From: Paragordius varius
Taxonomy: Eukaryota > Animalia > Nematomorpha
Assembly: GCA_964247055.1 (NCBI GenBank)
Contig: OZ176056.1
Location: 7,440,001-7,504,000 of the forward strand
Direction of reading: 5' to 3'
Length of the DNA: 64,000 bases
The position numbers and the translations under genes were made by a program. Of this stretch, positions 36,310-37,524 are shown piece by piece. The first letter of the stretch is position 1; each line of letters begins with the position of its first letter. Under the pieces are notes generated by a model, which had not been told where the DNA came from, searched no databases, and saw only the letters and a list, made by a program, of their open reading frames with translations.

Positions 36310-37524
36310 ATGAAAATCATTTTCATTAGTTTCTTTTTAGGTCTTGAGCTATTAATCGCATCAGGTATATATTACACTAACTTAAATATTTGACCATCAA
36401 ATTTTATTAACTTGTGAATTTTTACTTTCATTCTATTTAGGTTACCATACAACACCACATAGTATAAATAAACGCGAAGCAACAACGCACCAACATAGTC
36501 ATACACATGATTCCTATAGGAAAAGGGAAGCCACTACACATGCTATTAATCGCAGGGATATTGATGCTGTTATGACTGATTCTATCGCCAAAAATAAGAG
36601 AGATGCTGTCACTGAGAATTTTATGAATAACTTTAACACAAAGGCCATGAAAAAAAGAGAAGCCACAGATAGCTTATTTGATATGGGTACAAAAATGATG
36701 AAAAGAGATGTTACGACAGCTCATGATATGAACAAACGGGAAGCGACAGATAGTCTATTTGATATGGGCACAAAAATGATGAAAAGAGAAGCCATTTCTG
36801 ATCATTACATGGATTTCAATTGAGAAGGAGAGACGTAACAACCGCGCATGCCATAAATAAGCGGGAAGCTACAGATAGTTTATTCGATCATGGAACAAAA
36901 ATGATGAAAAGGGATGTTACGACAGCTCACGATATGAACAAAAGAGAAGCAACCGATAGTCTTTTTGATCTGGCTACAAAAATGATGAAAAGGGAGGTTA
37001 CGACAGCTCACGATATGAACAAAAGAGAAGCAACCAATAGTCTTTTTGATCTGGGTACAAAAATGATGAAAAGGGATGTTACGACAGCTCACGATATGAA
37101 CAAAAGGGAAGCTACAGATAGTTTATTCGATCATGGAACAAAAATGATGAAAAGAGACGTTACTACAGCCCATGATATGAACAAGAGAGAGGCGACCGAT
37201 AGTCTTTTTGATCTGGGAACAAAAATGATGAAAAGAGATGCTACGACAGCTCATGATATGAATAAACGGGAGGCTACTGATAGTTTATTCGATCATGGAA
37301 CAAAAATGATGAAAAGAGAAGCCAGTTCAGATCATTTTATGGATTTTAATACCAAAGCCATGAAAAAAAGGGATGTAACAACCGTACATTCCTTAAACAA
37401 ACGAGAAGCGACTGACAGTTTATTCGACCTTGGAACGAAAATGATGAAAAGGGATGTTACCACGGCACATGCTTTGAATAAGAGAAAGGTTACAGACCAG
37501 GTCGTAACAACAGCTCACTTCTAA
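36310..37524 (+). CDS. KR-repeat multi-peptide precursor D (382 aa if repaired; 145 aa as written, because of a frameshift and TGA at 36821). Exons 36310-36364 and 36441-37524
   Basis: Signal-like MKIIFISFFLGLELLIASG, then tandem KR-separated units EATDSLFD(M/H/L)GTKMM and DVTTAHDMN, 81-nt repeat period. The provided ORFs 36572-36823 and 36820-37524 are two frames of one gene. Confidence 0.85.

Follow-up and report, generated by a model that had tools for sequence, protein, structure and literature searches.

Does a repeat-rich locus in the genome of a horsehair worm encode a secreted precursor that is cut into many small peptides, and is such a gene being kept or lost? We examined the locus in a window of 64 kb, which is the whole stretch of DNA that was analysed. 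The explanation that we keep as the best one, and hold to be somewhat probable, is a secreted multi-copy propeptide precursor of signalling type, lineage-specific and non-amidated. The evidence for it, and for the explanations that compete with it, is given below.

Structure of the locus

The window has 20-33% GC and few long ORFs. The following features were read at the locus:

36253..36259, + strand: possible TATA box (TATAAAT), 51 nt 5′ of the ATG
36310..36364, + strand: exon 1, with the ATG, the predicted signal peptide MKIIFISFFLGLELLIAS and the first base of a Gly codon
36365..36440, + strand: AT-rich intron of 76 nt, GT..AG, read from the sequence
36441..36823, + strand: exon 2, first frame, with nine KR/RR-bounded peptides and a TGA at 36821-36823
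36819..36820, + strand: frame break, with 10 bases fewer than the second natural allele and the two intact FNTKAM units
36820..37524, + strand: exon 2, second frame, with 234 open codons, 17 more peptides and a TAA at 37522-37524
36659..37485, + strand: array of 81-nt double units, from TRF and unit alignments
37536..37541, + strand: possible polyadenylation signal (AATAAA), 12 nt past the stop

Exon 1 comprises 55 bases, starting with the ATG at 36310 and ending in phase 1 before GT. Its predicted signal peptide, judged by eye, consists of MK, 15 hydrophobic core residues and an end of small residues (A-S-G). When 36364 is joined to 36441, a GGT codon (Gly) is formed and the sole long open frame is entered. 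The TATAAAT string is weak evidence for a promoter element, as such strings are common at a genome GC of 25%, and the same is true of the AATAAA string given the AT-rich genome.

The sequence-only reading had described one continuous polyprotein. However, the frame in the window breaks; it runs into the TGA at 36821-36823, and the rest is open in another frame. This second frame of exon 2 contains no stops across its 234 codons, in a stretch of 31% GC. The 81-nt repeats claimed in the same reading were recovered by TRF, which found a period of 81 nt (85% matches) and a higher-order period of 243 nt (87% matches). Each 81-nt double unit is made up of an EAT-type unit of 16 codons and a DVT-type unit of 11 codons, and two units of a third type interrupt the array. 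No matches were found in tRNA and Rfam scans of the window.

Elsewhere in the window, two Gly/Pro/Arg-rich ORFs, at 25713-26204 and 27306-27677 (both on the - strand), are conspicuous in these ORF-poor surroundings; in one of them, KR follows a hydrophobic stretch at the N-terminus. Two short elements, at 37876-37934 and 38033-38076, lie 0.35-0.55 kb 3′ of the gene and are 76% alike over 42 nt. At both, the contigs of three sequencing runs (X1, X3 and X5, see below) break and the depth rises 5- to 10-fold, which indicates a dispersed repeat of high copy number that might be a MITE family.

Peptides encoded by exon 2

The translation of exon 2 is a series of short peptides separated by KR, RR, RKR or KKR. 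In the translation of 36310-37524 we counted nine EATDSLFD(M/H/L)(G/A)TKMM units (one with N for D), nine (D/E)(V/A)TT(A/V)HxxN units, three FNTKAM-type units, one of them truncated, and a His-rich unit, EATTHQHSHTHDSY, present as a single copy. These are the same unit counts, truncated unit and His-rich unit that had been read from the letters before. Singleton units are YHTTPHSIN, EATTHAIN, DIDAVMTDSIAKN and the C-terminal VTDQVVTTAHF. The nine peptides of the first frame are YHTTPHSIN, EATTHQHSHTHDSY, EATTHAIN, DIDAVMTDSIAKN, DAVTENFMNNFNTKAM, EATDSLFDMGTKMM (twice), DVTTAHDMN and the truncated EAISDHYMDFN. By eye, two super-families alternate, with the patterns F-(M/D)-x-(G/F)-(T/N)-K-(M/A)-M and T-T-(A)-H-x-x-N.

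The units had been described as bounded by KR or RR. Runs of at least two basic residues were indeed far more frequent (25) than in 20,000 shuffles (10.1 ± 2.2, maximum 20), a comparison in which the repeat units are mutual copies and hence the basic sites are not independent trials. Asp or Glu directly follows 24 of the 25 runs, and the next residue is Ala, Val or Ile. Thirteen of the 25 units start with EA, and half start with DV, EV or DI. Gly was found before none of the 25 basic sites, so the absence of Gly-Lys-Arg amidation signals noted earlier was borne out and the peptides should not be amidated. The precursor has no Cys or Trp and a single Pro. The net charge of all predicted peptides is 0 to -3.

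The residue content raises the question of whether the peptides might bind metal or act as antimicrobials. All TT(A)H units contain His, and one unit is rich in His; moreover, after removal of EA, two units would start with T-T-H, which has the pattern of the amino-terminal Cu/Ni site known as the ATCUN motif. However, most TT(A)H units would carry His at position 4 rather than position 3 once trimmed, and peptides that are all acidic or neutral are unlike cationic antimicrobial peptides, so that a classical cationic antimicrobial role is disfavoured by their charge. We consider a metal-binding or antimicrobial function very improbable.

Selection on the repeat units

The EAT units (nine, 48 nt each) and the DVT units (nine, 33 nt each) were put into ungapped alignments, and a Nei-Gojobori count of the differences gave the following results:

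EAT units, coding frame: pS 0.64, pN 0.052, pN/pS 0.081
DVT units, coding frame: pS 0.82, pN 0.079, pN/pS 0.096
EAT units, other two frames: pN/pS 1.21 and 0.97
DVT units, other two frames: pN/pS 2.81 and 1.68

For the two sets combined, pN/pS was 0.087 (0.03-0.17 by bootstrap over codon columns), far under the control frames. The purifying selection that had been proposed among the repeats was thus upheld by a test of the dN/dS type. Synonymous sites between units are close to saturation. The Arg of the KR pair is conserved across AGA, AGG, CGG and CGA codons, and residue variation in the EAT unit falls mostly at position 9 (Met in two units, His in three and Leu in four), which matches the earlier description of many silent differences with residue change focused on an M/H/L site. 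The unit copies are old, and each is preserved at the protein level.

Purifying selection on the units would fit a structural repeat equally well. A secreted repeat protein could work uncut, as a helical or disordered component of a matrix, egg-string, cuticle or adhesive, and the KR pairs would then be charged positions of a 27-residue structural repeat and not cleavage sites. The best of the AF2 single-sequence models agrees with this, being one continuous helix with a pLDDT of 76. However, the helix model is unstable (pTM 0.27); the other four models had pLDDT values of 31-44, and the sequence contains no hydrophobic heptad or core and no Cys. In addition, the dibasic pairs bound units of at least five kinds, 8-16 aa in length, each starting with an acid plus Ala, Val or Ile, and this bead-like design differs from a fixed structural period. 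The models thus predict no compact fold for the precursor, and we regard a protein working uncut as unlikely, although it is the first of the alternatives that we would consider.

The frame break and natural alleles

In the window, the first frame ends after 145 residues. The shift sits in the truncated third-type unit, where the window is without 10 bases that are present in the two intact FNTKAM-KKR units. Two ways of bridging the break were considered and rejected. A micro-intron was one of them: there is no GT from 36790 to the TGA, and therefore no short intron repairs the frame. The other was an alternative acceptor AG at 36831-36832, which would bring exon 1 in frame with the second part. 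It was discounted because its context is purine-rich, with no pyrimidine tract, and because one in three acceptors fits by chance.

We then placed contigs of four public runs on positions 35500-38300 of the window. The contigs span the intron and the intergenic DNA equally, which marks the four as DNA runs. In X1 (organism A, sample S1), the form of the window and a second form were about equally deep (311 of 622). The second form has 10 extra bases after 36819 and two substitutions, and it reads locally ...DFNTKAM-RRR-DITTAH... in a single frame. Only the form of the window was seen in X3 (organism A, sample S2; record 15, no differences), and X5, which is labelled organism B, also has the form of the window across the break (record 19). 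As the truncating allele is present in contigs of X1, X3 and X5, it is a real segregating variant that is neither an assembly error nor rare. Contigs reveal which forms are present but not which are absent, so that no allele frequencies can be drawn from them, and sample S1 is possibly the assembled individual. The second allele of X1, as read from its sequence, would encode an intact full-length precursor of about 25 peptides.

Two further observations concern variation at the locus. Record 19 of X5 (36799-36888) is a perfect match across the break and diverges from the window upstream of 36799; in that sample, the repeat units may therefore differ in number or order. Just 5′ of the gene (36088-36245) and within its first part (36497-36715), two haplotypes that are 5-7% different and have small indels occur in samples of organism A. 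One example showed 11 differences and 7 gap positions over 158 nt, which amounts to very high heterozygosity at the locus.

The differences listed between natural alleles were all synonymous within the core repeated peptides (7/7), and so were the four listed differences behind the break. Some of the calls within the array are possibly misplaced contigs of neighboring repeat units. The non-synonymous differences fall in the single-copy N-terminal units. At the cleavage sites, K changed to R twice, N changed to K, and a 3-base insertion added an Arg; these changes preserve or extend the basic run.

A common truncating allele might mean that we are looking at a young pseudogene, or at a dispensable gene on its way to being lost, with a selection signal that is historical. 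In the assembled haplotype the frame is shifted and runs into a premature TGA, the truncated allele is the sole form seen in X3 and also occurs in X5, and none of the words sampled from the stretch was found in the runs guessed to be RNA. It follows from the occurrence of the truncating allele in the assembly and at least three samples that the distal two thirds are dispensable in many individuals. Against gene loss, the intact allele segregates at about half depth in X1, the 234 codons behind the break are stop-free despite 31% GC, the allelic differences listed there are all synonymous, and the truncated product still has the signal peptide and nine peptides. Taking both sides together, we think it quite unlikely that the gene is a pseudogene or is being lost.

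Relatives and genomic setting

We call this gene an orphan in the sense that it has no relative in protein collections. The database queries were made with unspliced sequence and with the two frames unjoined, and with these queries Pfam gave no passing stretch. NblA, RpoY and other Pfam entries came up as repeat-driven pseudo-hits and were rejected. A word-indexed search of 5.8 billion proteins returned a single match, P0001, and no relative. P0001, a bacterial protein built of IDSLFDHG repeats, adjoins an integrase and a transposase, and its likeness in SLFDHG was attributed to chance. The full HMMER scan of 1.84 billion representatives gave eight weak matches (E 3e-6 to 7e-4), and the six of the eight that were inspected were unrelated repeat proteins. 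In the ESM Atlas, the best score (0.81) was at the level of shuffled controls. The search for paralogs in the genome (110.6 Mb, 44 contigs) found self matches only. The gene is single-copy, and it seems to be lineage-specific, with no detectable relatives; the earlier suggestion of a new family stands after Pfam, the word search, HMMER and the ESM Atlas. A search of papers gave nothing on peptide signalling or neuropeptide precursors in horsehair worms or nematomorphs.

The earlier attribution of the gene to an animal was confirmed by the mitochondrial contig of the same assembly, in which COX1 reads TGA as a sense codon and palindromes of the Nematomorpha type occur. This contig (contig 44, G000:C44) is 15.7 kb long, and its COX1 has six in-frame TGA codons. 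TGA as an in-frame sense codon is expected under the invertebrate mitochondrial code. The contig carries perfect palindromes with arms of up to 208 nt and no spacer. The palindromes, together with the tandem hairpins described below, were noted at 1431-2021, 5104-5900, 6032-6293 and 6752-7451 of this contig.

Coding mitochondrial palindromes are a published peculiarity of Nematomorpha (PMC6649704; also PMC10380579), and this one signature points to a hairworm. About 10 tandem copies of a 49-52-nt hairpin, 72 nt apart, were also observed just upstream of COX1 (7480-8820). A nuclear contig contains a copy of mitochondrial DNA, namely a disrupted piece of COX1 with six stop codons at G000:C1:10612280-10612597.

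Hairworms are parasites that alter the behaviour of their hosts (PMC6649704, PMC10380579). As the genome comes from such a worm and the orphan gene has the design of a secreted multi-copy precursor, its peptides might be hairworm-specific molecules that act on the behaviour or immunity of the arthropod host and not on the worm's own receptors. However, the gene shows no tie to the parasitic stage or to any secretory organ, its peptides resemble none of the known families of arthropod peptides, and a common truncating allele fits an essential manipulation factor poorly. A host-directed action is improbable in our opinion, and equally so the extended version in which the acidic peptides are aimed at the host and the truncating allele is natural dosage variation of that factor.

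A model of the precursor

In the precursor model that we prefer, the signal peptide would lead the product into the secretory pathway, where convertases of the kexin/furin/PC2 type would cut after each KR, RR or KKR and a carboxypeptidase would strip the basic residues from the peptide ends. A DPP-IV-type enzyme might then trim the N-terminal dipeptide, which consists of an acidic and a small residue (EA, DV, DA, EV or DI). Two families of small, acidic, non-amidated peptides, F-D...TK(M/A)M and TT(A)H..N, would result, each in many copies. A full-length allele would yield about 25 peptides, and the haplotype of the window nine.

Two loci with a P_proprotein domain, as in kexin/furin-type convertases, were found in the genome, on contigs C3 and C4, and one DPPIV_N locus was found on C4. 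The presence of convertase and DPP-IV-type genes makes both cutting at KR and trimming of X-Ala possible. An EA start is a good substrate for DPP-IV/Ste13, whereas units starting with DV, EV or DI would be poor substrates, which makes it doubtful that every unit is trimmed. Secretion, cleavage, trimming and a signalling role are all putative steps of the model. The signalling role, of the hormone, neuropeptide or pheromone type, would be its weaker part. Several points were counted against the model: none of the sampled words occurred in the runs guessed to be RNA, the protein searches brought up no ortholog from another species, the gene lacks an amidation signal or any other classical mark of a bioactive neuropeptide, and the frame-breaking allele is common to the assembly and at least three samples.

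It is reasonable to interpret this locus as encoding a new family of secreted animal peptides, with a putative role. The kind of gene is itself ordinary, as multi-copy dibasic precursors occur, to our knowledge, in every animal phylum that has been mined. A constrained orphan precursor with about 25 predicted peptides nevertheless offers concrete molecules for mass spectrometry and for receptor work in worm and host. In addition, the natural pair of a truncating and an intact allele offers a loss-of-dose variant that could be used directly for phenotype association. RNA or peptide evidence, or a link to the parasitic stage, would make the gene more interesting.

Comparison with known precursor systems

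Amidated precursors (FMRFamide-type, cnidarian and molluscan) are similar to this gene in having many copies, dibasic processing and acidic residues after the site, and also in purifying selection that acts on the peptide and leaves synonymous sites free to vary. They differ in that no Gly stands before any basic pair here, and no known peptide motif was matched.

The sequence-only reading had likened the layout to fungal Kex2-processed repeat proteins. The likeness of layout is real: yeast alpha-factor and the fungal KEPs are also secreted tandem repeats separated by KR and followed by a dipeptide of the X-Ala type (EA in 13 of 25 units here). In precursors of the alpha-factor type, an enzyme of the Ste13/DPP-IV type could remove the X-Ala dipeptide. 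However, there is no sequence relation, and membership in this type was ruled out as the genome is that of an animal. Fungal KEPs also repeat one peptide, whereas two families alternate here, and half of the units at this locus start with DV, EV or DI instead.

Among the Ecdysozoa, the precursors of arthropod orcokinins and of the nematode NLP-type peptides NLP-14/NLP-15 share with this gene a signal peptide, many short acidic peptides bounded by KR, the lack of Gly-KR and more than one peptide type per precursor. NLP-15 peptides start with A-F-D-S-L-A-G-S-G, which resembles the A-T-D-S-L-F-D-x-G of the EAT unit, and the two have A-x-D-S-L-x-x-x-G in common. The orcokinin motif has D at position 3, I or L at position 5 and G-F-x-x-F in the C-terminal half. 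It is partly matched by the EAT unit, in which D3, L5 and G9 are present; unlike in the motif, no unit here contains G-F, and Gly is followed by T-K-M-M. Orcokinin and NLP-14/15 proteins were absent among the matches of the word search and HMMER. The gene was not filed under orcokinin/NLP-14/15 because G-F-x-x-F is missing and no search links them. In style, the orcokinin and NLP-14/15 precursors are nevertheless the nearest to this gene.
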